The notes under the pieces were generated by a model. The model had not been told where the DNA came from, made no database searches, and worked only from the letters and a program-made list of their open reading frames with translations. Of a stretch of DNA of 64,000 nucleotides, positions 23,357 to 48,667 are shown in pieces; the first letter of the stretch is position 1, and every line of letters starts with the position of its first letter. The stretch is from positions 248,001 to 312,000 of IMG/VR virus record IMGVR_UViG_3300032315_001715. One strand, written 5' to 3'. The position numbers and the translations under genes were made by a program.

Positions 23357-23767
23357 TTAGAGGTCGCCGTCCTTGCGGTTCTCGCTGCTATGCACATTGA
23401 ACGTGCCGCCCGGATAGCGGCTTTCCAGTTTGCGGACGTTTTCCTCGATGACGGCGTTTGGATCAACTCCAATGGCCCTGCAGGCGTTTACCCAATACCA
23501 AGCGATGTCACCCAGCTCACGGAAAAGATGGAACTTGGCGTCCTCGTTCCACGGCTTACCTTGGAAAACCATCTTCTTGATGATCTCGTCAAATTCACCG
23601 GCCTCCGATGCGAGACCAATACCTGCCGTCAGCAACAGGCTGACGTTTAGCTTGGGTTCCTGTGTGCTGAGGTCTCGCAGTCGATAGATCAGCTCGTTTA
23701 TGTCGTTGCTTGGCTGGCTGGTGACCTTTTCTACGAATTGCTCGTAAAGATTTAGATCCACGGTCAT
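23357..23767 (-). CDS. MazG-like nucleotide pyrophosphohydrolase
   Basis: GLASEAGEF.EIIKK..F.GK, ELGDIAWY, N..KL..RYP. Confidence 0.85.
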   Translation of the reverse strand: MTVDLNLYEQFVEKVTSQPSNDINELIYRLRDLSTQEPKLNVSLLLTAGIGLASEAGEFDEIIKKMVFQGKPWNEDAKFHLFRELGDIAWYWVNACRAIGVDPNAVIEENVRKLESRYPGGTFNVHSSENRKDGDL

Positions 23768-23835
23768 TGTTATCTCCTCAATGTGTATGTTGCCATAGCA
23801 TACCAAAGGAAGGTGAAGCACGCAATTTAATCATG

Positions 23836-33260: not shown

Positions 33261-34088
33261 TTAAGGAAGTGATGCATAGATGTGCTGTTGCAACTGCAAA
33301 GTGAACCCATGTCTCATGGCCAGCAGTGCTGCATATTCATGATTGCCCTGATTGCTACTTTGATCCAAGAGACCCGGTGTCCAGAATGAAATTCTTTCAT
33401 CAACCTCGCTGCGCATCTCCAAGCTGGCGTTGTTGCCCACCTTTTCCGGCGCACGGTTGTAGATGTTCATGGGACTCACGTAAACGCTGCGTGGACCCTT
33501 TTGCCGACGGAATTCATACGCAAACTCCGGAACATCGTGATGATTGCTAGCAGCGTCTGAGCTCACCACGAACTTCAGCACGTTTGCCCGTGCAAACACG
33601 TCGGGTCGGATGTCACCATAGCGATTGGTGGTTTCGTTGGCCTTTGGACTCACCACCAGGGTGGTTTCTGCGGGCAACGGACGAAGGAAGTCGCCATTGC
33701 TTTCGATCTGTGTGCGGAAACCCTGTGCGTGCAGGAATTCTAGGAAACTGGTTAGATTCTTTTGCAGCATGGGCTCTCCGCCGGAGACCACGATCAGCAA
33801 CCGATCCATGAAGCTTTCACGCACGATCCCGTTGCTTGCCACTTCCTTGTCCACCGCACCGTGGATCTTGGCCAGCACCTGGTCAAAGGTCAACACGTCG
33901 CCGCTATCGAACCAAGTGTCGCAGAACGTGCAAGCACGATTGCACTTGCTAAAACGAACAAACACCGCCGGCTCGCCGCTGAACGGCCCCTCGCCTTGCA
34001 GGGTTGCAAATACTGACGTTACCATCAGTTCATTCTCGGCCATGTTCTTGAAAAACGTGGGCGAGACTATTTCATTTTTACCAAACAT
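33261..34088 (-). CDS. queE: 7-carboxy-7-deazaguanine synthase (radical SAM)
   Basis: TLQGEGPFSG.PAVFVR..CNRACTFCDT (CxxxCxxC), SGGEPMLQ, IESNG, VVSPK, LQLQQH. Confidence 0.9.
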   Translation of the reverse strand: MFGKNEIVSPTFFKNMAENELMVTSVFATLQGEGPFSGEPAVFVRFSKCNRACTFCDTWFDSGDVLTFDQVLAKIHGAVDKEVASNGIVRESFMDRLLIVVSGGEPMLQKNLTSFLEFLHAQGFRTQIESNGDFLRPLPAETTLVVSPKANETTNRYGDIRPDVFARANVLKFVVSSDAASNHHDVPEFAYEFRRQKGPRSVYVSPMNIYNRAPEKVGNNASLEMRSEVDERISFWTPGLLDQSSNQGNHEYAALLAMRHGFTLQLQQHIYASLP

Positions 34089-34091
34089 CTA

Positions 34092-34382
34092 TCATTCATC
34101 TCCAAACATGCTTGCTATTCCCGCTCTGGTCGACAACATCATTGCCGGACGGTCTATTAATTTCTGTCCTTCGGATTCAAACCACCGCAGCTTGTATAGC
34201 ATTGATGCTGCGGTTGTTTTTAACGCGCATGTGAGTAATTCCTCACAATAACCCCAATCCGTACCGGCATCTAACGAGTGCCGTAACCAATCTATTCTTT
34301 CGTTTATTTCATCGGGTGTTAGCTTGTGCCAATCAAGTAACAACACGTCGCTACCAAAATCATTCGAGCCTGTCATTATCAC
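34092..34382 (-). CDS. Small hypothetical protein
   Basis: W.....DWG...ASMLYKLRWF pattern. Confidence 0.5.
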   Translation of the reverse strand: MIMTGSNDFGSDVLLLDWHKLTPDEINERIDWLRHSLDAGTDWGYCEELLTCALKTTAASMLYKLRWFESEGQKLIDRPAMMLSTRAGIASMFGDE

Positions 34383-34719
34383 TCCTAAGTTCCATCAGAA
34401 CGGCTTTGCTGATCCTAGTTTGCAGCTCCTGGTCGAGGCGGTCAATAAACTCGTCGCTGTCCATGATTTTTGCCATCTTCAAGCACTTCTCCATTGCGCG
34501 CCGATAGATGCGCTCCGCAGCAGCATTTCCAATGGTATCAAGATCTAATATTGAGCTAAATGACCTAATTAATGCTCTAGAACCTCGGCTTGGAGGGCCA
34601 TGCCATGCGATCTCACCATCAAACGTGATCTCTAGCAGAGGCCTGCCGCCGGCTGCCTTTAGGGTAAACGCAGATGGATTGGTATGAACTGATACCGATC
34701 CTTGACTGGTCGTGGACAT
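34360..34719 (-). CDS. Hypothetical protein
   Basis: GGAG RBS before MSTTSQ. Confidence 0.6.
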   Translation of the reverse strand: MSTTSQGSVSVHTNPSAFTLKAAGGRPLLEITFDGEIAWHGPPSRGSRALIRSFSSILDLDTIGNAAAERIYRRAMEKCLKMAKIMDSDEFIDRLDQELQTRISKAVLMELRSDNDRLE

Positions 34720-34720
34720 T

Positions 34721-34969
34721 TTATTCTCCGTGATTTGAAACAATTTTCAGCATGGTATGGTATTCTTCCCAAAGCTGGGCTAAAGTAGGGTATTCATACC
34801 GAAGGCACTGTTGTTGATATGCATGCTTCCCAAGTTCTCGTAGTTGATCCAGGGAGAACCAAACATCTGGTGCAACCTGTATTTGCCTATCTTGATCATG
34901 CTTGCCAAAAGGACGGCGATAAATGGTTTTACCGCCGTCGGGACTTTCATAGATCCACTTAGTGGTCAT
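34721..34969 (-). CDS. Hypothetical protein
   Basis: MTTKWIYESPDGGKTIYRRPFG motif. Confidence 0.6.
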   Translation of the reverse strand: MTTKWIYESPDGGKTIYRRPFGKHDQDRQIQVAPDVWFSLDQLRELGKHAYQQQCLRYEYPTLAQLWEEYHTMLKIVSNHGE

Positions 34970-35129
34970 TGACCTTGCGTGCAACCACCGCATCATCTCG
35001 TATTTCCCAGGTGATTTCATCACCTTCGGTCCATCCAAGATCATTTAGCATCGTCGGATCAAAAACAAGGATGATCTCACCATCTTCTTCGGCTACCTTT
35101 GCGGTATAGGTTTTTGGTTCAATGTTCAT
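34959..35129 (-). CDS. AbrB/MazE-like DNA-binding protein
   Basis: V.EEDGEIIL.F...MLNDLGW.EGD.I.WEI pattern. Confidence 0.55.
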   Translation of the reverse strand: MNIEPKTYTAKVAEEDGEIILVFDPTMLNDLGWTEGDEITWEIRDDAVVARKVNDH

Positions 35130-35629
35130 GAAAATAAATCCTCGTTCCATTCGCGATGTCCTTCGCGATACGCCATGTTTGACACGGTTTCTCGTACTTC
35201 AACGCGGAAGCACCAAAGTCGTGCAGCTTCGCCTGGACCCCATATTTCCGGTACATAAACACCATTGACATACTTATAAAGCATATCTGCCAGGCCTTCG
35301 CAGCCTAGACGAGGTAGAATCGTCAGCTTAGCCATCTTTTTTCTTTCCAGCATCTTGAACGTTTCAAGTTCCGGATCGTCGGCGGATACCAGTAGAGTAT
35401 GGTCAAATTGATCCTCAAGGATCTTCTTGAGTTCCTTGAGTCCGCCATAATCTGCTACCCAGTTTCTAACATCTAGATCATTGGTGCCAAAATAAAACTT
35501 CATCGAAAATGCATAACCGTGAATCATATTGCAATGACTGTCGGCACGCCATTGCCGATATGCACAGGGGAACGAATTGTGATATTCTTTAGTCGAAACG
35601 TATTTGTATGTGGTTGGTTCAGTTGTCAT
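35126..35629 (-). CDS. queD: 6-carboxy-5,6,7,8-tetrahydropterin synthase
   Basis: SHCNMIHGY (CxxxHG), WVADYG.LK..K..L..FDHT, GCEGLA, VEVRET. Confidence 0.85.
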   Translation of the reverse strand: MTTEPTTYKYVSTKEYHNSFPCAYRQWRADSHCNMIHGYAFSMKFYFGTNDLDVRNWVADYGGLKELKKILEDQFDHTLLVSADDPELETFKMLERKKMAKLTILPRLGCEGLADMLYKYVNGVYVPEIWGPGEAARLWCFRVEVRETVSNMAYREGHREWNEDLFS

Positions 35630-35786
35630 TGTTAAGATTTCCTTGCAGATATCCAAATGTAAACAGATCTTGCATCATACTATTGGATACGATAGAAGTC
35701 CATGACTGGTCTCCATTTTGCTGGAAAACGATATTGGCCTGCTTACCAGCATCATTGACAATTGGTATCTTAATTACTCGTGTCAT
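35619..35786 (-). CDS. Small hypothetical protein
   Basis: AGGAG RBS before MTRVIK. Confidence 0.45.
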   Translation of the reverse strand: MTRVIKIPIVNDAGKQANIVFQQNGDQSWTSIVSNSMMQDLFTFGYLQGNLNNDN

Positions 35787-35886
35787 CTCTTGTCTCCTGT
35801 TGAGCGATGTTTGATGACTGTGCAGAATGTTTAAAGTGGGTTGAGACAGTCCATAGTCCACTTGGATAGTATTTACGGAACCTCCG

Positions 35887-36339
35887 TCAAATGAAAATAT
35901 TCAATTCGTGTATTTTGTGAGCAGTGTTGTTTCTTATTTGATCAGCAACCATGTCAACTGTTTTGATCAACTCGTGGTCTTCGATAGCATAGCATTCTTG
36001 TTGATTCTGATTCATCGCCATCCTAGATTTACTGAGAAGATTTTTTGATATTTCCTCAGCGTCAGATGTAGCATCATTGGTATCAAGTATGATCTCAGCA
36101 TAAATTCTAAAATCTATGCCAGGTTGGTTTCGTCCCCGCATCAGCGCTGTTGCAAACTTACCTCGACCTATCTTGAGAGGTCCACGTGCTTCTTTGTTAC
36201 TTTCGTGATCGACAACATGCGCTCTTCCAAAGTAAAGAAGATATCTTTCCTTGCCAGGTTTTTCTATATCCCCGGATCGCAGCCCTTCGTTGATGATACG
36301 ATTGCTGCGATATTCTTGGTAGCCAATTCCTTTGGTCAT
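35887..36339 (-). CDS. Hypothetical protein, possibly GIY-YIG/T5orf172-like
   Basis: YLLYF..LKIGR..R..E..QECY spacing; weak. Confidence 0.4.
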   Translation of the reverse strand: MTKGIGYQEYRSNRIINEGLRSGDIEKPGKERYLLYFGRAHVVDHESNKEARGPLKIGRGKFATALMRGRNQPGIDFRIYAEIILDTNDATSDAEEISKNLLSKSRMAMNQNQQECYAIEDHELIKTVDMVADQIRNNTAHKIHELNIFI

Positions 36340-36346
36340 AGAGTCA

Positions 36347-36418
36347 TCACTTCATTCTAGCAACGATGTTGAAGAATTCTTGCTTGAGATGCGGATCTTC
36401 TCGAAACTTACCGCGCAT
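36347..36418 (-). pseudogene. folE: Displaced original 3' end of folE
   Basis: MRGKFREDPHLKQEFFNIVARMK*, 18/23 identical to the current folE end MRGVFREDPSLKQEFFNIVSKMP*. Confidence 0.85.
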
Positions 36419-36429
36419 GCCCAACGCAT

Positions 36430-37284
36430 TCATATTTTTCGTCCTTTTATTGTTCTTCCTCGAATATAACCAGTTGGAGTGGGTTCGTCTATTTTGCAAA
36501 GTAAATTCTTTCCAGTATCTTGATTTGTGAACCATACATGAGTTACCGGTCTACCTTTGATAAAATTAGGAGGCGGGTTTGACTTTTTAGGTATTTGCTT
36601 TTGTTCACCGGTAATCGGATTGTAAAACCATGAAGATGCACATCTATGTGGGTTTCCATGCTTCCAGCCATTTGGAATCATTTCACCGTCTTTAATCAAC
36701 CTACATTCATTAGTAAATGGATTATGCACCCACCTACGTCCCCTATTGAAATCATTGCTTAATCTTACATGCTTAGACGGATCATACTCTAAAGCATGTA
36801 TCATTTGGTGTAGTCCTAGATTTGAATCCAGCACGTGAATTCGACCTCTCAACGGAGATCCTTGGTACTTACGATTTTTATTATTCTGCGATCTTCCATA
36901 CCAAAATCCTGGTATTAACGGTTTATTACTTGCTATCATGGTATCTATAACACCATTTGTGATCCAAGAAAGTGATGGTGCATTTTCAAATACCGAATTA
37001 CATTGATTTAAAAATAACGGATTGATACGAGCATTGACCCGATTGAGAACTGAAATTTCGTATGATTTGGCATCGTCGGCAGTATTAAATATCCGTCTAA
37101 TTTTTGGTTCAAATGAATTGTGACCATATGCCTTTATCAAGGTTCGAACTAACTTTGACGATGTAAAATATCGAATCCATAGATCTTTTGAAATTGTTTC
37201 ATCGGTAAGATGTTTTGCGTATCTGCATCCAATATACCATTGTCCGGTAATCTTAAATCGAAGACTATAAACATACGCAACCAT
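36430..37284 (-). mobile_element. Free-standing GIY-YIG homing endonuclease with repeated C-terminal DNA-binding modules
   Basis: AYVYSL....GQWYIG.R, YFTSSK, E..VL, repeated W.TNG/WVHNP/WFYNP/WFTN..P.GW/F..GR units; TAAATA at 37307-37312 and GAGG RBS. Confidence 0.85.
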
Positions 37285-37335
37285 GAGAACCTCATACCTT
37301 TTAAGGTATTTAGTTCTCATGTCGCTTATCCAGTT

Positions 37336-38007
37336 TTATGGCATCTTAGACACTATGTTGAAAAATTCCTGCTTTAGGCTAGGATCTTCCCTAAACACGC
37401 CTCTCATGACAGATGTGGTCATCGCAGAATCGTGCTCCATAACACCGCGCATGGTCATGCACATGTGCTCAGCTTGTACCAATACTGCAATTCCTTCAGC
37501 TTCTGTTGCTTCCACTATTGCATCGGCAATCTGTACGGACATTTCTTCTTGGATCTGTGGCCGGGCTGAAATCCAATGTACCAAACGGTTAAACTTGCTG
37601 AGCCCGATCACGTTCTTTCCTGGAAAGACTCCGATGTAGCACTTGCCTCTGATACCCTGGAAATGGTGAGCACAGGTGCTGCGTATGCTGATCGGACCGG
37701 TAACATACACCTCATCATATTGATTGGCGTTAGGAAACGCGGTGATCTTTGGCTTTGGTAGGTAGCGGCCGGCAAATGTTTCTAGAACAAACATCTTTGC
37801 CACACGCCTTGCTGTGTCGTGGGTGTTGTGATCGTTGTCCGTGTCAATCACGAGGCTTTCGAGCACGCCCTGCATCTTTCCGGTAACCTCATCGATCAGG
37901 GCATCAAAATCAATGTCCCCAACCGCTTCGCTGATGTTGTCATTGCAGTAAAACCTGCTATCGCTTTCCTTGAGCCGATTACGGATCGTTTCGCTAGGTG
38001 TTGTCAT
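37336..38007 (-). CDS. folE: GTP cyclohydrolase I
   Basis: DTARRVAKM, STCAHHF, GLSKFNRLV..RPQIQE, AEHMCMTMRGV. Confidence 0.95.
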   Translation of the reverse strand: MTTPSETIRNRLKESDSRFYCNDNISEAVGDIDFDALIDEVTGKMQGVLESLVIDTDNDHNTHDTARRVAKMFVLETFAGRYLPKPKITAFPNANQYDEVYVTGPISIRSTCAHHFQGIRGKCYIGVFPGKNVIGLSKFNRLVHWISARPQIQEEMSVQIADAIVEATEAEGIAVLVQAEHMCMTMRGVMEHDSAMTTSVMRGVFREDPSLKQEFFNIVSKMP

Positions 38008-38067
38008 GTTGGTATCCTTTCTATAGGGAGTATAGCTAAAAGCGTGCTGGTAAGCACAAGATCTTTC

Positions 38068-38535
38068 CTAGACGGTTCCGTTTGCACCAGGGACTCGCAT
38101 TGGCTTGCTGTTCGGATATGACGTACTAATGGATGTCATCGTTGCAATGCTTGCCCCGATTGCCCCGGTTGCCCCGGTTGCTCCGATGGTCAACGGTGTG
38201 TAACCACCTGAAGCGCCGCCACCCGTCCATGTGATGGTCGTTGGAGCTAGAGCAATGCTGGCCATTGTCATGGAGTCCGTAAGGGTATCTACCCATAAGC
38301 TCGATGATAGATCAGATACATCATTCTTTAGCTTGGCCTCCACGGGATCCATTCCGGTTTCGACCATCACCGTGATGATCTTTCGCATGCCGTCAAGTTC
38401 TTTCTGCACGGCATGTGCTTTGGCCGTTAGCTCATCCATGGAAGCACGCACGGTTTTCATTTGCCGTGAAATGTCATCCAAGTCCTGTCGTGTTTGCCGA
38501 TATTCTTTAAAGTAGTCTAAAATTGCGTCATTCAT
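38068..38535 (-). CDS. Hypothetical protein (coiled coil plus low-complexity GAT tail)
   Basis: GGAGG RBS; GATGATGAIGA repeat. Confidence 0.55.
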   Translation of the reverse strand: MNDAILDYFKEYRQTRQDLDDISRQMKTVRASMDELTAKAHAVQKELDGMRKIITVMVETGMDPVEAKLKNDVSDLSSSLWVDTLTDSMTMASIALAPTTITWTGGGASGGYTPLTIGATGATGAIGASIATMTSISTSYPNSKPMRVPGANGTV

Positions 38536-39062
38536 AGTGGCGTATCCTCCGAGTATTTTCTCCATGGTGTAAAGACTTTTCGATCCTGTAACGTATGGAG
38601 ATCGTGGCACCAAACACCGGGATTGGTAGCATTGAAATCTTTGTCGTCGATCTTCAATGTGGCATTATAGCCAAGCAATCCAATGTAGGGTATTTTTACC
38701 GAGATCTGTGGAATGAAATTGGTCTTTTCACTGTATCCACCTTCGCACACCCAATCGACGTGCTTGACATCAAAATCAAGGGTCACCATGCAACCAAGAT
38801 CAAGCACGTCGTTGATCATCTTGTCCCAGCTTGCACTTTCAAGACTGGTACCGTCATGCCAATTTCCTGGATTGAAACTTTGATTAGCACCGAGATAGAT
38901 ATGATCACATCCAGATGCTGTAACATGATCTTTGATCGAACCGATATCGTGGATACCGACAACGAATAGTGTTTTCATTGCATATGCCGGTGTATGTTCA
39001 ACCTCAATGCCGGTGAAAAATTCCACGTCATTTCTAATACCAGTATCATATTCACGCTTCAT
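38532..39062 (-). CDS. Conserved hypothetical protein coupled to dpdA
   Basis: FFTGIEVEHTPA..MKTLFVVG, HIY.GAN.SF, LKIDD.DF.ATNPGVWCH; start overlaps the dpdA stop region. Confidence 0.75.
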   Translation of the reverse strand: MKREYDTGIRNDVEFFTGIEVEHTPAYAMKTLFVVGIHDIGSIKDHVTASGCDHIYLGANQSFNPGNWHDGTSLESASWDKMINDVLDLGCMVTLDFDVKHVDWVCEGGYSEKTNFIPQISVKIPYIGLLGYNATLKIDDKDFNATNPGVWCHDLHTLQDRKVFTPWRKYSEDTPL

Positions 39063-40692
39063 CAAAATCCTCCATTTCCATGCTGACGTTGTTATCGGCA
39101 TCCATCCCGGTAATATTACGCAGAAGCTTCTCATGCTTGTTGATGAGATCCATTGGACGCTCCGATGTTAGTATTTCTGGACACAAATCCTTAAACTCAA
39201 GAAGATCGGGAGTAACATGGTTATTCGCTTCTAACAGCGGTTGGTCTTGCCATCGGCAAGCATCCTGTATGGCCCGTATATGCAGCTCAACATTATGATG
39301 CATTGCGATCAAATACGAGAATCCATCCATCGAGCTGGGCCATTTAACCTGGTACTTTTCGTATTCCTTATCAAACGATCCTCCAAAATCAAATAGACCC
39401 CCGTTACCTCGATCGTGTGCGAGGTACTCCTTGTATGCGTCCGTCCATCGAAACTTGTCACCGCATCGACCTTCCGGAGTGGAGGGATACCAATCACTTT
39501 CAATTTCCTTCTTGGAGAATGGTATTTTCTTGTAATCCAAATCGTCGTATCCTCGAACACAGATATCGCCAACCGTGCAACGGCGGCCTATTTCCGTGGG
39601 CATGATCACACCCTTGCGATCATTTGCAATGACCCAATCATTGATCAGCATTTGGCTGTTCTTTAGGGACTTGTCATCCACGATTGAACCGCCCTTGAAA
39701 CGCATGTTGCGATGGCTGTTTTCATATCCATAATACATCTGACCCTTGGCTGTCATCACGAACGGCGATGCTGCATCAAAGCTCAGGGTGATGTTTGGAT
39801 TAATGAACTGCCTGATGTTTCTTTGCAGCGTGGTTAGTGCGCAACCGGCCTTGATCTTGCCATTACCTAGATAATGCAGCCAATCCCTGCCATCAAGATA
39901 TTTGCCGTCTCGCATGATGATCAACCTACGCAGATTGATGGCAAAGTTCGAAGCTTGCACGTTGGAGAATGCCCAGGTTTCAAACGGAAGGTCCTTGACC
40001 GCATCCCACCAAATGTCGCCTTCGGCTTCGTTTCTTCCCTGCAACACGTTGAGGAATTTGGTAGCACCTTCCTTGCGATGCTTGATGAAAAAATCGTAGT
40101 TTTCAAGCGACACGTTCAAACAGTCCCTGAAGGTCTTCATACCAGGATGCAGGCTTTCCCCGGTTACCGGATCGAATCCAAACTTAACCAGACCGTATGT
40201 AGGGACATCGAGCACCATGGAATAATCCGCGGTGTGTTCGAGCCACCGAAGGATTTTCATGCGCATCTTATCCTTGTCCTGCTCCCAGTCCTGATCTGTT
40301 TGCTTGCCTTTTTTGGTCCACGGCCATTTCAACACACCCGTGGCAATTTGGAATCCGCCCGAGTCTCCTAATATAACCGTGTTGGATCTATCCCTCTTTT
40401 GCACCATGCTTTCATAAATGTCACTGTCTGCTGGATCAAGATACGCATGACCAGCTGAGTAAAGTGCCGCCGGATAATACATCAGGCTGTTCTTTTGGTT
40501 TAAAAAGTCCAAATCAATGCGATCGTTATTAAGTCCGTCTGGTAACCGGTCTCGAACGGTGTATTCAGGCATGCTGACGATCTTGGCATAGATCGCACTG
40601 ATGCTTGGAAGGAATACGGCATAGTCCTTTTGTGACTCGGCTAAGTTCAACGCTTGTGGATGCAAGTCTAGTTGTTTGGAAAATAAATTCAT
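39052..40692 (-). CDS. dpdA: DNA 7-deazaguanine transglycosylase (TGT-like, DpdA2 type)
   Basis: LGDSGGFQ, MVLDVP, NVLQG, WLHYLG, SFDAASP TGT-fold motifs within a folE/queD/queE neighbourhood. Confidence 0.85.
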   Translation of the reverse strand: MNLFSKQLDLHPQALNLAESQKDYAVFLPSISAIYAKIVSMPEYTVRDRLPDGLNNDRIDLDFLNQKNSLMYYPAALYSAGHAYLDPADSDIYESMVQKRDRSNTVILGDSGGFQIATGVLKWPWTKKGKQTDQDWEQDKDKMRMKILRWLEHTADYSMVLDVPTYGLVKFGFDPVTGESLHPGMKTFRDCLNVSLENYDFFIKHRKEGATKFLNVLQGRNEAEGDIWWDAVKDLPFETWAFSNVQASNFAINLRRLIIMRDGKYLDGRDWLHYLGNGKIKAGCALTTLQRNIRQFINPNITLSFDAASPFVMTAKGQMYYGYENSHRNMRFKGGSIVDDKSLKNSQMLINDWVIANDRKGVIMPTEIGRRCTVGDICVRGYDDLDYKKIPFSKKEIESDWYPSTPEGRCGDKFRWTDAYKEYLAHDRGNGGLFDFGGSFDKEYEKYQVKWPSSMDGFSYLIAMHHNVELHIRAIQDACRWQDQPLLEANNHVTPDLLEFKDLCPEILTSERPMDLINKHEKLLRNITGMDADNNVSMEMEDFDEA

Positions 40693-40742
40693 GTTTTTCT
40701 ACCTTGTACCTAGTATGATCATCTAGGTGGTCTGAGTCAATT

Positions 40743-41864
40743 TTAAGATAACAAGGCGTTCATCAACGGAGTTGCCCTGATGTATCTATCCAGCATTGCT
40801 AGCTGGCTTAACATGCTAGTTCTGATGAAATTGCTATCAGAATGCTCCATGAGGCTGCGTATCTTTCCCATGAGTTTTTCTCGATTCTGCTCGTAGCTGG
40901 CAAAATCCTTGGTCCATTCTTCTGGATATTTTAACCCGGCATCATACATCTCGGTATAGCTCAGTCGATTTGGTACCAACGGTATTGCGCCGCATATCAA
41001 ACCTTCTATCATGCTGATGCCATACGTTTCCTGCAGATTGGCAGAAAATACCATCTTGCTTTGCCCGAGCATGGTATGATATTCGTGCTTGGATAGCTCG
41101 CGTTCCTGGCATACCACCCATTCATACTCTGGCATGTGGTTAGCAAGATCCTTAAAGATATCAAGTTGCTTCTCTGGAGCAAGACGATGTGGAAACGCGA
41201 TTTGATTCTTCTTTTCCATGGCCGTGTATGGCTCTAGAACGCTCTTTAGATAATCCATCGGCCAGCCGGTGATATCGACCTTGCGATTTACGATCCAATT
41301 GGCCTTAACCTCATCGAACGTCGGAGCAAATGCTTCATTGTAGAATGGTCCCCATAGATTTTCTATGAACATGTCTAAATGAAAATTGGTTGCAAACCAA
41401 TTGGTATCATACGCTGCCATCATGGCTTTTTCGGAATGTCGAACCCAGGGTGCGTTACCGATCAGTCTACCTAGGAAATCCTGTGGATCATAACTACCAG
41501 CATGCCACATACCATGGATTTCAACCGGTATGTTCAATAGTTCGCTCATGTATCGAACCGAAATTACCGATGGATTCCACGCATCGGTAAAGAGGAATCG
41601 ATCACCTGGTTTAACGCGACCATGCTGGAATTCAGCAGCTATAGCACCTAGCTGAGAGCTCTTGTAGATGTTTGTTGCACCAAAATCAAGAAATGCACCG
41701 GGCGTTGGAACCGGTGGTACTTGCTCACCGTCAACGACGATGATATCAATTTTCTTTCCCATGACCGCGGCCTGTTTCTCGAGGGAAACAGGGATATGTT
41801 CATACCATTGCCTGGTATATCTGGTGTCAATCGGTTCAATTGGTACGATATATATTCGTGTCAT
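40743..41864 (-). CDS. GT-B fold glycosyltransferase
   Basis: WHAGSYD, FPHRLAPEKQ, SANLQETYGISMIEG..GAIPLVP..SY.E (GT4-like ExFG/E motif). Confidence 0.8.
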   Translation of the reverse strand: MTRIYIVPIEPIDTRYTRQWYEHIPVSLEKQAAVMGKKIDIIVVDGEQVPPVPTPGAFLDFGATNIYKSSQLGAIAAEFQHGRVKPGDRFLFTDAWNPSVISVRYMSELLNIPVEIHGMWHAGSYDPQDFLGRLIGNAPWVRHSEKAMMAAYDTNWFATNFHLDMFIENLWGPFYNEAFAPTFDEVKANWIVNRKVDITGWPMDYLKSVLEPYTAMEKKNQIAFPHRLAPEKQLDIFKDLANHMPEYEWVVCQERELSKHEYHTMLGQSKMVFSANLQETYGISMIEGLICGAIPLVPNRLSYTEMYDAGLKYPEEWTKDFASYEQNREKLMGKIRSLMEHSDSNFIRTSMLSQLAMLDRYIRATPLMNALLS

Positions 41865-41929
41865 TTCTTATGATACCTTTCCTACGGGCTGACTGTCAAT
41901 GTAAATACACAACGATAGGGAGATAGGCT

Positions 41930-42670
41930 ATGCCTGAATTGATTCAACCACATAATCATGTTTGTAACTGGTGTCACAGACCGGCTAATTTTTTGAGCGT
42001 TAACGCTAAGAAATATCGATGTGTTAGCAGTATAACCAAATGTCCTGGCATTTCTGCTAAGGCTGAAGCAACTCGGAAATCAAGAATGTCAATCGATGAC
42101 AGACGAGATCATATGAAGAGAATGAATCAAAAAGCTAACGAAACTATTAAGAACCTCAGTGAAGATCCACAATGGAAAGAACGTAGATCATCAAAAATTT
42201 CAGAAGCGGTTAAGCTACGCGGCGGTCACATTGGTAAAAATAATCCAATGTATGGAAAGAAACATTCATCTGGAACCATTGATAAGTTAAAGGCCGCGGC
42301 ATCATCTAGAGATCATATCGCATATGAAAAAGCCACTAACACAAAGATATCAAACGGCAACGCAATTTCAAAGGATCTAAAATCAGCATATGAGCTCTAC
42401 GAAGAAGAGGTTGACCAAATTACTAGAAATTCTTGGATCAAACATCAATCATTAATCAATCCAAATGGATATACTAGAGGTAGCGATTATGAACTAGATC
42501 ACAAATATAGTAAGCATAATGGATTTATACATGGAGTTGATCCAACGGTGATAGGACATCATGCTAACCTAGCTTTGATTGCAAAATCATCTAATCGATC
42601 AAAAAGGATAAGATGTTCTATCACCTTAGATGAACTTCACTCTCTTATCGAGAGTGCTCCCACTTCATGA
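41930..42670 (+). mobile_element. Free-standing HNH-type homing endonuclease with NUMOD3, antisense in the dpd cluster
   Basis: N-terminal CxxC..C..C, GKNNPMYGKKHS (NUMOD3), YELDHKYS..G..NL..N.SK; AT-rich; TAAATA at 41902-41907. Confidence 0.75.
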
Positions 42671-43037
42671 GTGCTCCGTTTTCGTCGTCTTCAGACACAT
42701 CGATCCATACGTCTCTATTTGGCCACTTAGCCGATATCTTTTCATATAGATCTTCAGCTATCATTTCGCAGCTACGATAGTCTAGTTGCAATACCTTATC
42801 AGAATACAATTTCTCGAGGTATCGTTTTGCCTGAATAAATTCCACATCTCGATCATTATGCTCGACACTGATCCATACCTTGAAATGAAACATATGACGA
42901 TGGGGATAACCAAGATAGCTGACATCATATTCGTCGCCAGTTGCCAACGCAGGATCGGTCAATGCCACTGGATACTTGTGGATGCCTTCCTTGCTAAATT
43001 TCACATACACCATACGGCTGGTAGGTTCAATAGACAT
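42645..43037 (-). CDS. dpdL: QueD-paralogous T-fold protein, DpdL-like (putative CDG decarboxylase)
   Basis: YLGYPHRHMFHF (LxxxHRHxF), DVEFIQ, SCEMIAEDL, VSEDDENG. Confidence 0.65.
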   Translation of the reverse strand: MSIEPTSRMVYVKFSKEGIHKYPVALTDPALATGDEYDVSYLGYPHRHMFHFKVWISVEHNDRDVEFIQAKRYLEKLYSDKVLQLDYRSCEMIAEDLYEKISAKWPNRDVWIDVSEDDENGALMKWEHSR

Positions 43038-43095: not shown

Positions 43096-44103
43096 TTACT
43101 TGTTGGCACGCACCGAAACTAGATTTTTTTCAAAGATATCAGTGCAGGCTTTCCATGTGAAACGCCTGCTGCTTTCCTCCACCATCTTTCGATCAAGATT
43201 TAAGCACACGTTTATGGCTTCGGAAAGATCGTCAGCTATACACCCGTCCACTCCGGGTGTGATGATATCGATCGGACCTGTTACCGGATATGCTGCTACC
43301 GGGGTGCCACATGCCATGCTTTCAAGCATCACCACGCCGAATGTGTCGGATCGGCTGGGAAATACAAACACGTCTGCATTGGCATAATATCGCGCTAGGC
43401 TGGCCCCTTTTTTATAACCAGCGAATATAACATCGGGATATTTAGATTTAAGAGTTTCAAGATACGGACCATCACCTACTAGTATCTTTGTTCCCGGTGT
43501 TTTGATCGAGCAAAAGTCATCAAGTCCTTTTTCGGGACTAGCGCGGCTAACACAAAGTAGAACCGGTTTTCCAGCAAGATTTGTTTTGCGCTGATCCGTG
43601 TTAAAAGTGTTATGATCGACGCCTCGGCTCCATATCACAAGATTGTTGAATCCTTTGCTGCGTAGCTCTTGTTCCATGGTAGCAGTTGTTACTAAAACTC
43701 GATGACTGAACTTGTGGAAGACTCGCATGAAAAAATAGCCCACCCTGACTGGTATTCCGTGGTGTATCTTGAGATATTCGGGAAACTTGGTGTGATAGCT
43801 GGTATTGTGCGGTATCTTCCTGTGCCTGACCTTGCAATACCACCTTGCGGCGATACCTAGTGGCCCTTCAGTGGCTATGTGTATGAAGTCAGGATTAAAA
43901 TTCTCTATCAATCTGCCAATTTTCCAAATATCCCATGATAATCTAACCTCAGGATATCCTGGCATCGGAATGGTACGGAAAAGTCCCGGTTCTATGACCT
44001 GTACCTCATATCCGCGTTGTTGCATTTCTAATACAGTGGCCCGCAAGGTAGTGACCACCCCGTTTACGTTATCCCAGGTGTCTGTTACCACTGTTAGTTT
44101 CAT
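43096..44103 (-). CDS. GT4 glycosyltransferase, Agt-like (glycosyl-diacylglycerol synthase)
   Basis: VTDTW.NVNGVVTTL, HIATEGPLG..AR, TSYHTKFPEY, WSRGVD, EKGLDDF, FVFPSRSDTFGVVMLESMACGTPVAAYPVTGP. Confidence 0.8.
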   Translation of the reverse strand: MKLTVVTDTWDNVNGVVTTLRATVLEMQQRGYEVQVIEPGLFRTIPMPGYPEVRLSWDIWKIGRLIENFNPDFIHIATEGPLGIAARWYCKVRHRKIPHNTSYHTKFPEYLKIHHGIPVRVGYFFMRVFHKFSHRVLVTTATMEQELRSKGFNNLVIWSRGVDHNTFNTDQRKTNLAGKPVLLCVSRASPEKGLDDFCSIKTPGTKILVGDGPYLETLKSKYPDVIFAGYKKGASLARYYANADVFVFPSRSDTFGVVMLESMACGTPVAAYPVTGPIDIITPGVDGCIADDLSEAINVCLNLDRKMVEESSRRFTWKACTDIFEKNLVSVRANK

Positions 44104-44876
44104 TTGTATGTTTCATAGATCTTCATTGATCCGTCCTCTTCCAACAATAATAGCTGAAATTCGCCATCATGCGTTTCGACAAGAACCGAGCATGTTTCTA
44201 CCCAATCGCCGTCGTTGGCATAAATCACGCCATTTATTGCTTTTATGGCAGGAGTATGTATGTGTCCGCATATGACACCGTGGAATCCATTGCTCTTGGC
44301 ATGTGCAGCCAAATGTTCTTCAAATTTGTAAATGAAATTAAGTGCTTGCTTGGTTCTACCTTTGACATATTTGCTGAGGCTCCAATAACCAAGACCAACT
44401 AGTTTTCTCATACGATGTATTAGACCGTTGCACATCAACAGGGCAGTATATGCACGATCACCTAGAATGCTCACCCATTTCCAATGCCGTGTTACCTGAT
44501 CGAATAGATCACCGTGTGTGACAAGCCATTTTCTACCATGTAAATCAACATGTGTGATTTGATTTGATATGGTGATATTTCCGGTCTTAAGACCATGCTT
44601 CAACCACGGACGAAGGAACTCGTCATGGTTTCCGATGATGTAGTGGATCTTTGTGCCTCTCTTGGCTTTGGTTAGAAGCCGGCGAACAACATTGCTGTGT
44701 TCTTGCGGCCAATGCCACCCCCTTGAGAGCTTCCACCCGTCGACGATATCCCCAACAAGATATAATGTATCCGAATTGTTGTTCTTGAGGAAGTTGCAAA
44801 GCTGGTCGGCTTTGCAACCTTTCGTACCAAGATGTATGTCTGATATCCAGATTGATCTATATTGCATTTTTCCCAT
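44100..44876 (-). CDS. plcP: PlcP-type metallophosphoesterase (phospholipase C; LpxH-like family)
   Basis: ISDIHLG, LYLVGDIVDGW, WPQ.H..VVR.LL.KA..GT, GNHDEFLR, HGDLFD, LGD.AY, YWSLS, GVICGHIH, NDGDWVETC. Confidence 0.8.
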   Translation of the reverse strand: MGKMQYRSIWISDIHLGTKGCKADQLCNFLKNNNSDTLYLVGDIVDGWKLSRGWHWPQEHSNVVRRLLTKAKRGTKIHYIIGNHDEFLRPWLKHGLKTGNITISNQITHVDLHGRKWLVTHGDLFDQVTRHWKWVSILGDRAYTALLMCNGLIHRMRKLVGLGYWSLSKYVKGRTKQALNFIYKFEEHLAAHAKSNGFHGVICGHIHTPAIKAINGVIYANDGDWVETCSVLVETHDGEFQLLLLEEDGSMKIYETYK

Positions 44877-45091: not shown

Positions 45092-45835
45092 TCAGCGAAC
45101 CTTGGCCGGGAAGATGTATCGATAGGTACCAACACCGGTGTTCAGCGTGATCTGGATGGCTCCTTTGGTTGAAAACGCCATTTCACAATCACAAGTATCG
45201 GCTGCCTTGAGAACTCCCAGGACCTGCTGGATCTTCCACTTGTGCTGGCTTTCAAACGTTTCAGCACGTTCGCTAGCAAACACAACACCTCCTCGCTGGG
45301 TGGCTGCATTGTCCTCGCCAATGAAGAACTTGAGATCGCCATCAACGATCTTCGGAATGAAATACTGTTCATACGCAGCGAGACCATTAGCAGCCCATGC
45401 AAACTGCTGAACATTAGCCTTGGTCGGTGTAACGACCACGTCCCACTTGGGTTCCAAGAACTTAGGCTGCTCAGGAACCAAGGTCTTGCTCATGAAACGA
45501 TAGTTGATGTAGCTTTTGCTTCGATTCTCATAGGCCAGCTCGGTTGGTATGCGTTCGGCATTCTTGGTTTCATATACCACGGTCATCACGCTTTCCTTGG
45601 CGGTAAATTCCGGGTCATTGCAAATGGTTTGCAACAGGCTGAGATTGCTCAGGCCAAACTCGCCCTCGAGATCCACCAATGGCTTACTGAATTTGCCCTT
45701 GAGGATAACTTCCTTTTCCTTTTCCATCGCCTCAACGGAAATCTCCTTTGCGGTTGCGGTAACCTTGATCTTTTCAAAAAATCCAGCCGTTGCAACGTAA
45801 GTGGTGAGATCCTTAAAGTAATCTTTTAACGCCAT
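45092..45835 (-). CDS. Probable sliding clamp / polymerase processivity factor
   Basis: About 247 aa, two-domain alpha/beta pattern, ends GAIQITLNTG..YRYIFPA; near polB. Confidence 0.55.
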   Translation of the reverse strand: MALKDYFKDLTTYVATAGFFEKIKVTATAKEISVEAMEKEKEVILKGKFSKPLVDLEGEFGLSNLSLLQTICNDPEFTAKESVMTVVYETKNAERIPTELAYENRSKSYINYRFMSKTLVPEQPKFLEPKWDVVVTPTKANVQQFAWAANGLAAYEQYFIPKIVDGDLKFFIGEDNAATQRGGVVFASERAETFESQHKWKIQQVLGVLKAADTCDCEMAFSTKGAIQITLNTGVGTYRYIFPAKVR

Positions 45836-46038
45836 TGTATATCTCCGATCTTCTTCTGTTGTTCTTCTTGCATCTTCAGTTTCATGTTCTCTTCTACGAG
45901 CTCGTCGCTCCATCCGCAGAGATACTTGAGTATGAAGCGTTTAGACAAATATGACGGTGCTCCGTTGAGCGCGTCAACCAGGATCTTGAGCTCCTCTGGA
46001 GTATATTTCGGAGGCCTGGATACATTTTTTGCGGTCAT
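45826..46038 (-). CDS. Small hypothetical protein
   Basis: YLSKRFIL.KYLCGWSDE..EEN motif. Confidence 0.55.
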   Translation of the reverse strand: MTAKNVSRPPKYTPEELKILVDALNGAPSYLSKRFILKYLCGWSDELVEENMKLKMQEEQQKKIGDIQWR

Positions 46039-46227: not shown

Positions 46228-47241
46228 TTAAAAACTGAATAGATCACCAAAACTGTTGGCTTCTTTGTTTGAATCTAAATCCCAGCGCAGCACGCCGAGG
46301 AGGTTTTTTACCTTCTTGTCTATCAATGCGGCTTCCATGGCCTCATCATCAAATGGTAACTGCTTGAACCATTCTGGCAAGGTAAGCTCATCGACCGGAT
46401 ATGCCACCGAAGTTAACCCGCTGGGATTTGGCCGAAGCTTGCAAACGATAACCTTAAATCCATCTTGGATTGGCATGGAGTAATGATCATTATGGATTTT
46501 TTTGAGCCTGTTCCAATTAATGGATGCAAGAACATGCCCGGGTATCATGGATTTCTTGCCTGGGTCTCCGCCCTTCCAATCAACCTTTCCCTGTAAGTCC
46601 ATCACGTTTTGATAATGGGTTATCTTGTTAGCACGTTTCGGTGAACCTTTCAACCATCCAGGCCAGCTACGGAATTCCTTACGGAATGCCAGTATCTTCT
46701 CATGAATGTCACCTTCTGTCGATCCGGTCAATACTGCCGTTAATATATCACTGAGAAAGTCTTGCACGATCTTAGGAGTATCACTGCGCTTGAGATCCAA
46801 TCCCATGGCCTTGATCTCGCCAGGCTTGCCGTTGAGATCCTTGCGCTTGCCTTCCTTGTCATAAATCAGCACCGCATAACGCTTCTTGGTGATGAATAAT
46901 CCCTTGTATGCACACAATTCTCGAGCAGCACGGATGATGGCACCGTTTTCTTCTGGACAATTGAATGCTTGGTTCATAAACTCAGGAAAGCTGTCGTTGG
47001 TCATGTCGCCGATGTTATCATACAGCTTGCTGACATTTTCCTTGGTCCACTCAAAGTCCTTGAACTCTGGCTGATCCTTCATCACTGGATATGCGCTGAA
47101 ATACCCAGAATTATGGACTAGTAATCCGTTAGCAAAAAAATATGGATGATTCGTATCCATTCCTACATCATATACATATTCGTCTTCAAATTCTCCAAGA
47201 TCCTCAACAGATGATATCTCTGTTAGGTAATGTTCCACCAT
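46228..47241 (-). CDS. polB: Family B DNA polymerase, C-terminal part preceded by C-intein
   Basis: After HN: SGYFS, GLFITKKRYA, KAMGLDLKRSDTP; AAGAGG RBS inside the endonuclease 3' end. Confidence 0.9.
   Translation of the reverse strand: MVEHYLTEISSVEDLGEFEDEYVYDVGMDTNHPYFFANGLLVHNSGYFSAYPVMKDQPEFKDFEWTKENVSKLYDNIGDMTNDSFPEFMNQAFNCPEENGAIIRAARELCAYKGLFITKKRYAVLIYDKEGKRKDLNGKPGEIKAMGLDLKRSDTPKIVQDFLSDILTAVLTGSTEGDIHEKILAFRKEFRSWPGWLKGSPKRANKITHYQNVMDLQGKVDWKGGDPGKKSMIPGHVLASINWNRLKKIHNDHYSMPIQDGFKVIVCKLRPNPSGLTSVAYPVDELTLPEWFKQLPFDDEAMEAALIDKKVKNLLGVLRWDLDSNKEANSFGDLFSF
47110..47241 (-). mobile_element. C-intein (44 aa) of a naturally split intein
   Basis: MVEHYLTEISSVEDLGEFEDEYVYDVGMDTNHPYFFANGLLVHN|S: block F VYD, block G FFANGLLVHN, Ser+1. 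Confidence 0.92.
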
Positions 47242-48266
47242 TTTACAACCTCTTTTATTACAGTGTTTGCATCTTTTATAAAGTCAGTTTCCCAGATTAT
47301 TTTTAACGAAAACCCCCTGGTAGTCGCAGCTTTTATCTTAGCATAATCATATGCCCAAATATTGTTAGCTGTCATTTTGAGATGAGGATGATAAAATGAA
47401 GATTCATACATCAATGGGTTACAATGCCAATAATCGCCATTGAATTCGATAATTTTCATACGTTGGCTATCTGTTATATCATAAAAACATGGAGATTGTA
47501 ATACATCGCTCCATATACAAAACTGATTGGTCTTTACTGTATATTGAAGTGATGCACCGAGACTACTTTCTACATATTCAATAAATGCGAGTTCGGCTTT
47601 AGAAGTATATCCTCTATTGTTTCTTTTGGATAAAATCTCTAAAGCTGTTGGTTTATCTACTGAATATTTTGACATTATCCAATCTATGTTAGAAGATTTA
47701 CCTTTTTCTCGATTGTAGTCGATCCATTTTTGGTATCCATCTAGTCCATATTTCTTTTCAAAATAATCTAAACTATTAGTGTATCGTTGTTTCTCAACAT
47801 AATTTTCCCATATTTGCAAGCCAACCTGCTCTCCATGACGAGCTATACATTTTTCCTCAGTTACGGCACGAGACCGGTTGAATTCGTTAAATTCCTCAAC
47901 AGACCAACCGTATTTTTCTTTCTTGGTTTCATAAAGATTTTTGACTCTTTGTTTTTCTCGATAAGATTCCCATTTCTGTAGGCCAATTTCGTTGCCATAT
48001 CTAGCTAGATATGTTTCTTTTGTCCGTCTGGTACTGTTTTGTCGTAGAAACTCAAATCTCTTAACAAGGTCAGTTAAGTCGTATGATACGAGATGACAAA
48101 ATGTATTATAGTAGCCGTTAATCAACGACACTCCGTTTGATATCATATGATCATACAACAGATGTATTTTTTCTACCTCACATTGAGAATATGATCGTTG
48201 ATTTGTAGCCGCTCTAAACCTAGCCGAGTTTATTACATCGTTGATGTTATCAATTTTCTTTGGCAT
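47223..48266 (-). mobile_element. Free-standing Vsr-like (PD-(D/E)xK) homing endonuclease between the polB halves
   Basis: Repeated YG...G...W..Y.EKQR units; SKAE..F; FYDI....KIIEFNGDYWHCNP; D..K...A..RGF.LKIIWE; TAAATA at 48289-48294. Confidence 0.85.
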
Positions 48267-48319
48267 GTTGTGCGCTCCTATTATGAGTTATTTATTCACA
48301 ATAGAAGCTGTATTGTGAC

Positions 48320-48667
48320 TCACAACGAAATTATTTTATCACCGACCGAAAGTTCCGTTGGCTTCTTGCTAACAAGCCGACCATCGTCGGTGACTACCAT
48401 GATCGAATGGTCAGCAGTGACGATCACGCTTTTGCCATCTGAGGTATTAACTCGATATTTCTTTTTAGATACCTTATGACGATATACGTAATTATACGTG
48501 GTCCAATCGGTGGTTTTCGAGGAATGATCATATCCAATTAATTTGATTTGGTCATTAACAGAATACTCTTTGTCTCCGTCATTCCAGAATAAACTACCAT
48601 TCAGAAACAGATCTTCGATGGTTCTTTTTCCGACTGAGGTTTCGATGATTGACGCAGAATCAACCGA
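48320..48667 (-). mobile_element. N-intein (115 aa) of a naturally split intein
   Basis: YGDTD|SVDSASII (block A, Ser1), VTADHSIMV (block B TxxH), KPTELSVGDKIISL*. Confidence 0.92.

Follow-up and report, generated by a model that had tools for sequence, protein, structure and literature searches.

A predicted 7-deazaguanine DNA-modification module of the DpdL type, with a linked glycosyltransferase-like gene, in a 453-kb jumbo phage

FolE, QueD, and QueE convert GTP to 7-carboxy-7-deazaguanine (CDG), and DpdA enzymes exchange guanine in DNA for 7-deazaguanines. In phages that lack QueC, it has been proposed that DpdL, a T-fold paralogue carrying an LxxxHRHxF motif and lacking the catalytic Cys required by PTPS/QueD, decarboxylates CDG to 7-deazaguanine, and the DNA of the founder phage, phiST, which has DpdL and no QueC, is 100% dDG by LC-MS (PMC10516641). 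However, DpdL plus DpdA of phage ACP17 alone gave no dDG in E. coli, and the authors suggested that unknown enzymes are needed. The two phages differ in their transglycosylases, as phiST uses a 259-aa DpdA3 and ACP17 a DpdA2-family enzyme. A further group is represented by the Pseudomonas jumbo phage PA5oct (Wroclawvirus) and the Sinorhizobium jumbo phage Phosso; PA5oct DNA, the base of which is chemically undetermined, is resistant at G-containing restriction sites and is sensed by hypermodification-dependent END nucleases (PMC12191111). Here, we compare these systems with a locus in a 452,799-bp jumbo phage genome (IMG/VR record IMGVR_UViG_3300032315_001715), analyzed as a 64,000-nucleotide window (positions 248,001 to 312,000 of that record); coordinates below are those of the window unless given as genome positions, and the genes listed with window coordinates are on the minus strand unless stated otherwise.

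An earlier note, made from the sequence alone, had described five genes between 33261 and 43037 (queE, queD, folE, a TGT-fold DpdA, and a second T-fold protein) and no queC, queF, or gat-queC in the window, and this observation is confirmed in full. QueE (33261-34088) carries a CxxxCxxC motif (CNRACTFC) and is matched by Pfam Radical_SAM (3.7e-7), by PHROG QueE (2e-44), and by NCBIfam QueE models at 2.6e-22 (TIGR04322) to 1e-15, all below the equivalog cut-offs. QueD (35126-35656; Pfam PTPS, 5.1e-15; PHROG QueD, 1e-34) has a CxxxHGY variant (CNMIHGY) of the CxxxHGH motif, and the same variant occurs in the QueD of ACP17 and phiST. FolE (37336-38007) is matched by Pfam GTP_cyclohydroI (7.6e-49), PHROG (8.5e-53), and NCBIfam (9.5e-50). 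These E-values are far beyond chance. FolE, QueD, and QueE are likewise present, and QueC absent, in the phiST and ACP17 systems.

The 130-aa protein encoded at 42645-43037 is a DpdL homologue, with LGYPHRHMF at residues 42 to 50 and a match to phrog_17812 at 1.1e-30. In tblastn comparisons, it is 50% identical to ACP17 DpdL (7e-32), 35% to phiST CGPG_00067 (2e-8), 63% to the Phosso protein, and 57% to that of PA5oct, and the motif is present in all 75 homologues examined, although the PA5oct motif reads HFH rather than HRH. The LxxxHRHxF motif that the note had given for DpdL is stated verbatim in PMC10516641.

In contrast, the assignment of the transglycosylase to DpdA2, also made in the note, is not established. 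The 546-aa protein (39052-40692; DSGGFQ at residues 110 to 115) has no Pfam, PHROG, or NCBIfam hit, and no Pfam TGT hit appears even at E of 1 or below. Its AF2 model (pLDDT 85.8) nonetheless has a TIM-barrel TGT fold: all top 50 Foldseek PDB hits are TGTs (best E, 3e-6), and VIA Z-scores are 19.7 for ArcTGT, 17.8 for TGT, 17.7 for QTRT2, 15.7 for bacterial DpdA (7ui4), and 14.4 for Cap10, against at most 12.2 for generic TIM barrels. DSGGFQ, LD.P, and SFDA motifs are present, D110, D162, and D306 are invariant in the family, and hhalign aligns D306 with the aspartate of the E. coli Tgt “FDC” motif. BLAST finds no DpdA2, and hhalign gives E 2.3e-4 over 196 columns with ACP17 DpdA but only 39 columns at E 0.008 with nt-1 DpdA2; the protein cannot be aligned with DpdA3. 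It has about 150 residues more than the DpdA/TGT superfamily members, its Zn-site motif is not evident, and it is not placed in any named subfamily (phage DpdA1-4 included) but belongs to a separate, unclassified clade of 2,442 metagenomic members, shared with PA5oct (32% identity) and Phosso (29%).

The note also overlooked several genes inside or next to its own coordinates. The first, which we call X (40743-41864), encodes a GT-B/GT4-like glycosyltransferase with an invariant EX7E motif (E279...E287), as judged from an AF2 model (pLDDT 86.7) that Foldseek matches to BshA, MshA, and GlgA at 2e-9, with VIA Z-scores of up to 24.2; X scores below the Pfam GT cut-off. X is 35% identical to ACP17 ASD50404 (8e-65), 42% to its PA5oct counterpart, and 47% to that of Phosso, and it has at least 7,981 metagenomic homologues. 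Among 80 related IMG/VR loci, the closest relatives of X, DpdL lies directly upstream of X in 75 of the 75 evaluable loci, while FolE, QueE, and the DpdA-like gene shift position; because these loci are the closest relatives of X, part of this adjacency may be inherited synteny rather than functional coupling. X also lies within 3 kb of DpdL in six unrelated GenBank phage lineages (ACP17, the PA5oct group, Phosso, X1/BUDD, BCSR5, and the T4-like cyanophage BUCT-ZZ01), whereas six other DpdL lineages lack it, so that X is linked to DpdL in about half of those examined. In PA5oct, the DpdA-like gene, X, and DpdL are contiguous, with QueE and RNaseH downstream; in Phosso, the DpdA-like gene is 170 kb away from DpdL-X. 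phiST has no X and has MazG and an AAA-like gene instead. The glycosyltransferase is not mentioned in PMC10516641 (0 occurrences).

The second overlooked gene (38532-39062; the likely start is the ATG at 39062, while the longest ORF runs to 39134) encodes a conserved protein of ~176 aa with no Pfam or PHROG hit. It is 28% identical (1e-10) to ACP17 ASD50402, the gene just upstream of ACP17 DpdA; ACP17 shares the small protein, X, and the DpdL arrangement. The family (165 to 188 aa) is found in 66 of the 80 related loci, typically directly upstream of DpdL. The third is a canonical GT4 glycosyltransferase (43096-44103; Pfam Glyco_trans_1_4, 3.2e-22; Glyco_transf_4, 9.6e-20), which is specific to this phage's version of the locus and has no homologue in the 80 loci. 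The fourth is an NAD-dependent NDP-sugar epimerase/dehydratase (50642-51646; Pfam Epimerase, 7.6e-39; GDP_Man_Dehyd, 6.5e-27), possibly a donor-sugar tailoring enzyme; the same family occurs in 23 of the 80 loci and is adjacent to X in one of them (L010).

In total, these observations are consistent with a DNA-hypermodification module of the DpdL type, embedded in the replication-gene block of the phage, and we hold this model with moderate confidence. We posit that FolE, QueD, and QueE make CDG; that, with no functional QueC, CDG is taken by the DpdL homologue and, as proposed in the literature, decarboxylated to 7-deazaguanine; and that the divergent TGT-fold protein exchanges genomic guanine for that base after replication. 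The gene identities, the TGT fold, and the conserved catalytic aspartates are what our analysis shows; the conversion of GTP to CDG follows from established pathway knowledge, whereas the decarboxylation, a step without biochemical demonstration in any system, and the transglycosylase activity are inferred. Given X, the small conserved protein, the second GT4, and the epimerase, we expect a 7-deazaguanine-derived virion base that is quite possibly further sugar decorated, or made through a glycosylated intermediate, rather than plain dDG or dCDG, although glycosylation by X is plausible but unproven and 7-deazaguanine has no hydroxyl group, so the acceptor is not obvious. There is a precedent in huimycin/dapiramicin biosynthesis, in which a GT4-family (PF13439) glycosyltransferase, HuiG, attaches a sugar to the 2-amino group of a 7-deazapurine base derived via FolE-QueD-QueE; that product, however, is an actinomycete secondary metabolite made from preQ0, with QueC present, and is not inserted into DNA. 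GT-B enzymes encoded among replication genes also decorate DNA in the T4 alpha/beta-glucosyltransferase and arabinosyl-5hoC systems (T4 AGT matches X at Z 17.0 and the phage HY126 GT at Z 18.3), but those act on hydroxylated pyrimidines made by ThyA homologues, and this genome has no ThyA-family gene. The predicted structure of a DpdL-X complex gave no answer. The biological role of the modification would be protection against restriction and other DNA-targeting defenses.

Could the pathway instead end at plain dDG (or dCDG), as the note had inferred in proposing an anti-restriction base? The note's interpretation is only partly supported: FolE-QueD-QueE, DpdL homology, the TGT fold, and the absence of a canonical QueC or QueF hold, but the DpdA2 label is not established, and a stop at CDG/DG may be incomplete. 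In this view, which we consider possible but less likely, X, the second GT4, and the epimerase would act on something else, such as host envelope glycans or proteins, and would sit beside DpdL only through inherited gene order. Consistent with this reading, phiST makes dDG without X, so X is not needed for dDG; several DpdL lineages lack X; DG offers no hydroxyl acceptor; the 80 loci share a conserved replication-module order; and a distant X-like GT of PhiXhv-12 sits in a GlmS/BshB-like context without deazaguanine genes. Set against it, DpdL-X adjacency persists at about 50% X identity while the neighboring genes move around, it recurs in unrelated phage families, including the T4-like cyanophage, there is no ThyA-type enzyme to create a pyrimidine acceptor, and the ACP17 reconstitution with DpdL and DpdA failed.

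A search of the rest of the genome for queC, which the note had set as a check, found no canonical QueC or QueF and a single QueC-type signal, a divergent PP-loop ORF at genome positions 375,035-375,694, about 85 kb outside the module. That this protein is a functional QueC or QueC* acting in trans, giving dPreQ0- or dADG-type bases, is unlikely. Its SGGxDS PP-loop and all four Zn-ribbon cysteines align with E. coli QueC, Pfam QueC scores 25.2 bits against a cut-off of 22, a PHROG QueC-like family matches at 2e-8, and the Atlas places it among viral QueC-annotated clusters. However, the Pfam match covers only the C-terminal 55 residues, TIGR00364 scores 15.8 bits against a cut-off of 150.3, the central QueC blocks (DYGQR, PGRN, and GYPDC in E. 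coli) have no counterpart, and only the two terminal motifs match nt-1 QueC. The gene is paired with a twitch radical-SAM gene, and in a relative it sits beside Thg1, RNA ligase, and NUDIX genes, an RNA-repair context. It is absent from phiST, ACP17, PA5oct, and Phosso, which share the DpdL module and also lack QueC, and from all 80 loci, and thus it probably does not feed this pathway.

Least likely is that the products are not DNA bases but a glycosylated pterin or free deazapurine metabolite, or that the transglycosylase acts on tRNA, since, although X resembles the pteridine glycosyltransferase BGluT (5zer; Z 19.8), is acidic (pI 5.6) like GTs with small-molecule acceptors, T-fold enzymes bind pterins, and a PRTase is common in related loci, BGluT is not a privileged hit among many other GT4 enzymes, the genes sit inside the DNA replication block (PolB, RNaseH, and primase in relatives), phiST and PA5oct DNA are experimentally modified or restriction resistant, and DpdL lacks the Cys noted above.

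The locus also differs from those of PA5oct and Phosso in carrying, besides the second GT4, two homing endonucleases. One, a GIY-YIG (SegE-like) enzyme (36430-37320; Pfam SegE_GIY-YIG, 4.2e-6), is inserted between the FolE and QueD regions, and the other, an HNH/NUMOD3 enzyme on the plus strand (41930-42670; Pfam NUMOD3, 3.8e-5), separates X from DpdL, which are contiguous in most related loci. A calcineurin-like metallophosphoesterase (44100-44876; Pfam Metallophos, 4e-9) overlaps the GT4 stop/start. Finally, the gene at 45092-45913 encodes a homologue of PA5oct EST35_0314 (blastp, 32% identity, 7e-48; phrog_12062, 6.5e-43), annotated as a “structural protein” by ESI-MS/MS, which is conserved upstream of the DpdA-like gene and present in 60 of the 80 loci.

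The observation that a QueC-less set of 7-deazaguanine DNA-modification genes lies in this region is confirmed. The IMG/VR virus record is 452,799 bp long and rated complete by CheckV, the window covers its bases 248,001-312,000, and all genes of the finding lie on the minus strand: queE at 33261-34088 (CNRACTFC motif; PHROG QueE 2e-44), queD at 35126-35656 (CNMIHGY motif; PTPS 5e-15), folE at 37336-38007 (7.6e-49), a 546-amino-acid open reading frame (ORF) with DSGGFQ at 39052-40692, and a 130-amino-acid ORF with LGYPHRHMF at 42645-43037. Neither the window nor the genome has a canonical QueC or a QueF. A megablast search of the 9.8-kb region against GenBank phages returned no match. The QueD of this phage has CxxxHGY in place of the canonical zinc-binding CxxxHGH, a variant shared by the QueDs of ACP17 and phiST and thus normal for this pathway type. 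The interpretation offered in the earlier note, namely a pathway of FolE, QueD, QueE, a DpdL-like protein and DpdA2 that stops at CDG or DG, is only partly supported, for the reasons outlined below.

The DpdL motif given in the earlier note is correct: the CxxxHGH motif of QueD becomes LxxxHRHxF in DpdL, the proposed CDG decarboxylase, and phiST, which has FolE, QueD and QueE but no QueC, has all of its dG replaced by dDG (PMC10516641). In the window protein the motif, LGYPHRHMF, occupies residues 42-50 and aligns with the motifs of ACP17, phiST and Phosso, and 75 of the 75 homologues that we collected carry it. The protein is homologous to the founding members, with 50% identity to ACP17 ASD50405 (tblastn 7e-32; blastp 3e-39) and 35% identity to phiST CGPG_00067 (tblastn 2e-8; blastp 1e-14), and it is 63% identical to a Phosso protein and 57% identical to a PA5oct protein. 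Its genomic context also fits, in that FolE, QueD, QueE and a DpdA-like gene are present and QueC is absent, with the caveat that a divergent QueC-like ORF lies 85 kb away. There was no PF01242 hit at an E value of 1 or below, and hhalign of the DpdL profile against the window QueD was not significant (E 0.087); the T-fold assignment rests instead on a published HHpred result for phiST DpdL (PMC10516641). The decarboxylase activity of DpdL remains a proposal, because DpdL plus DpdA of phiST or ACP17 gave no dDG in Escherichia coli (PMC10516641). The family has 2,680 representatives at 50% identity. Among these representatives, DpdL occurs fused to three other domains (proteins P0312, P0333 and P0384): a YhhQ-like Vut_1 domain (the preQ0-transporter family), a PAPS-reductase-like PP-loop domain, and a dUTPase/DCD domain. 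Xanthomonas phage X1 also has a PAPS-reductase-family gene inside its cluster, which is not related to the QueC-like ORF of this genome, and the genome itself has no YhhQ, HIT or real PAPS_reduct gene. A MazG-like nucleotide pyrophosphohydrolase (Pfam 2.8e-7) at 23357-23821 on the minus strand is weakly similar to the MazG that sits next to DpdL in phiST.

The 546-amino-acid protein has no Pfam, PHROG or NCBIfam hit, and PF01702 (TGT) finds nothing in the protein or anywhere in the genome at an E value of 1 or below, although ACP17 DpdA2 and phiST DpdA3 fail this test too. Membership in the DpdA/TGT superfamily is nevertheless supported by predicted structure and by motifs. An AlphaFold2 (AF2) model (pLDDT 85.8) gave only TGTs among the top 50 Foldseek hits in the PDB, and in an all-against-representatives structural search (VIA), five TGT-superfamily entries stood above generic TIM barrels, namely ArcTGT (Z 19.7), TGT (17.8), QTRT2 (17.7), the DNA preQ0 insertase DpdA (15.7) and Cap10 (14.4), whereas generic TIM barrels reached at most 12.2. 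D110 (in DSGGFQ), D162 and D306, the equivalents of the catalytic aspartates D102, D156 and D280 of the Z. mobilis enzyme, are invariant in 19-21 family members; D306 aligns with the nucleophile-motif aspartate (MFDC) of E. coli Tgt, and all three motif blocks align with ACP17 DpdA (hhalign E 2.3e-4 over 196 columns).

In contrast, the DpdA2 label given in the earlier note is not supported. ACP17 DpdA is itself a clear DpdA2, with 36% identity and 8e-38 to Vibrio phage nt-1 YP_008125322 and to VH7D, but tblastn with the window protein finds only PA5oct-like phages, Phosso and one Vibrio jumbo phage, and hhalign to nt-1 aligns 39 columns at E 0.008 with a probability of 5%; only structure links the two (the nt-1 protein in BFVD at E 2.8e-9). 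Similarity to DpdA3 of phiST (CGPG_00065) was not detected either, given that BLAST was not significant, hhalign aligned 12 columns at a probability of 0.9%, and the BFVD match had E 3e-3. The protein is therefore a DpdA-like enzyme of the TGT superfamily, assigned from sequence motifs and predicted structure, in an unnamed clade with 2,442 metagenomic members. PDB sequence and profile searches returned nothing usable for this protein, for the neighboring gene X described next, or for the QueC-like protein.

The earlier note also overlooked several genes. Between the DpdA-like gene and dpdL lies a 373-amino-acid gene, which we call X (40743-41864), whose AF2 model (pLDDT 86.7) has a GT-B fold with two Rossmann-like domains of the type found in GT4 retaining glycosyltransferases; it matches BshA, MshA and GlgA at 2e-9 by Foldseek, with VIA Z scores of 24.2-20 across GT4 enzymes. 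The EX7E motif of GT4 enzymes is present (E279-TYGISMI-E287), and both glutamates are invariant in 15-18 homologues. However, X scores below the Pfam Glycos_transf_1 gathering threshold (18.8 bits against a cut-off of 26.4). It is 35% identical to the ACP17 gene that sits between DpdA and DpdL (8e-65), and it has orthologues beside DpdL in PA5oct and Phosso; in PA5oct the DpdA-like gene, X and DpdL are EST35_0316, EST35_0317 and EST35_0318. Of the 80 IMG/VR loci that were retrieved with X, DpdL lies directly upstream in 75, and in the other five X is within 400 nt of the contig end; the positions of FolE, QueE and the DpdA-like gene vary among these loci, but the DpdL-X pair does not. X also lies within 3 kb of DpdL in Xanthomonas X1/BUDD, in Burkholderia BCSR5 and in the T4-like cyanophage BUCT-ZZ01, in which the orthologue narrowly passes the Pfam cut-offs (28.3 against 27, and 26.5 against 26.4) and a second glycosyltransferase and a PRTase are present. 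The phiST group, RHph_I1_18, Ahp1 and others have DpdL without X. X is therefore an accessory to DpdL and is not required for dDG.

Other genes are linked to this pair. A protein of about 176 amino acids with no assigned function (38532-39062) is present in 66 of the 80 loci and in ACP17; Atlas leads for it (glycosyl-hydrolase-like fragments, score 0.86 or less) are too weak to use, and the Phosso "glycosylase" upstream of DpdL is not homologous to it. A homologue of a PA5oct protein detected in virions by mass spectrometry (45092-45913, minus strand) is conserved immediately upstream of the DpdA-like gene in 60 of 80 loci and in Phosso. In related loci (L010-L089 of the retrieved set; e.g., L010:12005-12493 and L010:12951-13295), a small phosphoribosyltransferase (PRTase; 54 of 80 loci) and a HIT-domain protein (30 of 80) lie just downstream of X, although neither is near the cluster in this genome; the PRTase could salvage the guanine released by base exchange, or it could ribosylate the deazapurine as in tubercidin biosynthesis. 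An NDP-sugar epimerase/dehydratase occurs in 23 loci and is adjacent to X in L010. The window itself adds a canonical GT4 (43096-44103) next to dpdL, which is not orthologous to the extra glycosyltransferase of BUCT-ZZ01, and an epimerase/dehydratase at 50642-51646. Two homing endonucleases are inserted inside the module, a GIY-YIG SegE-like gene (36430-37320, minus strand) and an HNH/NUMOD3 gene (41930-42670, plus strand), the latter on the strand opposite to dpdL, with its 3' end overlapping the dpdL 3' end by 26 nt.

In total, the gene identities, the predicted TGT fold with its conserved aspartates, the predicted GT-B fold with EX7E, and the conserved linkage are what our analysis demonstrates directly; that FolE, QueD and QueE make CDG and that DpdA-type enzymes exchange G in DNA is established knowledge; and we infer that DpdL decarboxylates CDG, that the DpdA-like enzyme inserts the product, and that X, with or without the second GT4 and the epimerase, transfers a sugar to the base or to a precursor. 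This variant of the known DpdL-type deazaguanine system uses an unclassified DpdA-like transglycosylase and carries a previously unremarked, tightly linked module of putative glycosyltransferases, and in the literature that we searched no paper linked a glycosyltransferase to DpdL or to deazaguanine DNA modification.

We speculate, tentatively, that the DpdL-GT4 pair, together with the small conserved protein and, in this phage, the second GT4 and the NDP-sugar epimerase, makes a sugar-bearing 7-deazaguanine in virion DNA. If so, the statement that the pathway stops at CDG or DG would be incomplete, and this would be, to our knowledge, the first glycosylated purine hypermodification in a phage genome. 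It would explain two published results, namely that DpdL plus DpdA alone could not be reconstituted and that PA5oct-type DNA, whose base has not been identified, is sensed as "hypermodified." PA5oct DNA is resistant at G-containing restriction sites and is sensed by hypermodification-dependent END nucleases (PMC12191111). A chemical precedent exists in that GT4-family (PF13439) enzymes N-glycosylate the 2-amino group of a 7-deazapurine in huimycin and dapiramicin. On the other hand, DG has no hydroxyl group, phiST does without X, and some of the linkage may be inherited synteny. A complex prediction for X with DpdL gave no answer and is not evidence either way, and isoelectric points do not discriminate, because X is acidic and the second GT4 basic but the DpdA-like protein is acidic too. 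A route through glycosylated hm-pyrimidine or 5hoC was considered and rejected, because these sugar-on-hydroxypyrimidine routes need a ThyA-family enzyme and the genome has none.

Could a QueC acting from elsewhere in the genome supply preQ0 or ADG instead? We judge this unlikely. A search of the rest of the genome, proposed beforehand as a check, did turn up a 219-amino-acid ORF at genome 375,035-375,694 in which the PP-loop (S29-G-G-x-D-S34) and the four zinc-ribbon cysteines (C186, C195, C198 and C201) align with E. coli QueC. However, it passes Pfam QueC (25.2 bits) only through its last 55 residues (155-209), it fails TIGR00364 (15.8 bits against a cut-off of 150.3), it lacks the central QueC substrate blocks, and it has no PDB sequence hit. 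It is absent from phiST, ACP17, PA5oct, Phosso and all 80 loci. The ORF lies convergent with a twitch-domain radical-SAM gene (N_Twi_rSAM 5e-47) and next to an OMP beta-barrel gene (genome 373,855-375,694; L001:288-2127), and the trio is conserved in relative L091, where Thg1, RNA ligase and NUDIX genes are nearby, which suggests an RNA/tRNA-related function. The Atlas shows many virus-only QueC-like clusters.

7-Deazaguanine DNA modifications are a major phage counter-defence, and the DpdL branch is the least understood, given that its decarboxylase is unproven and its reconstitution failed. In about half of the DpdL phage lineages examined, DpdL travels with a conserved GT4-like putative glycosyltransferase, and in most related loci it also travels with the small protein; moreover, many jumbo phages use a large transglycosylase of predicted TGT fold that no current HMM library recognizes. 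These families are large, with at least 7,981 X homologues in addition to the DpdL and DpdA-like members counted above, such that the module is widespread. These results give concrete candidates for the components missing from reconstitution, and they point to a possibly new class of sugar-decorated purine in DNA. Cultivable models exist in PA5oct, Phosso, ACP17 and BUCT-ZZ01, and the question also matters for phage therapy, where PA5oct is used, and for the sequencing or cloning of such genomes.

Elsewhere in the window, the family B DNA polymerase (46228-50566, minus strand) is split into two ORFs (48320-50566 and 46228-47241), with intein-splicing-domain matches at the junctions and a 347-amino-acid ORF between them; the polymerase of PA5oct is similarly interrupted by a homing endonuclease. 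A homologue of the anti-CBASS phosphodiesterase Acb1 (Pfam Acb1 7e-13) is encoded at 55908-56372 on the minus strand.
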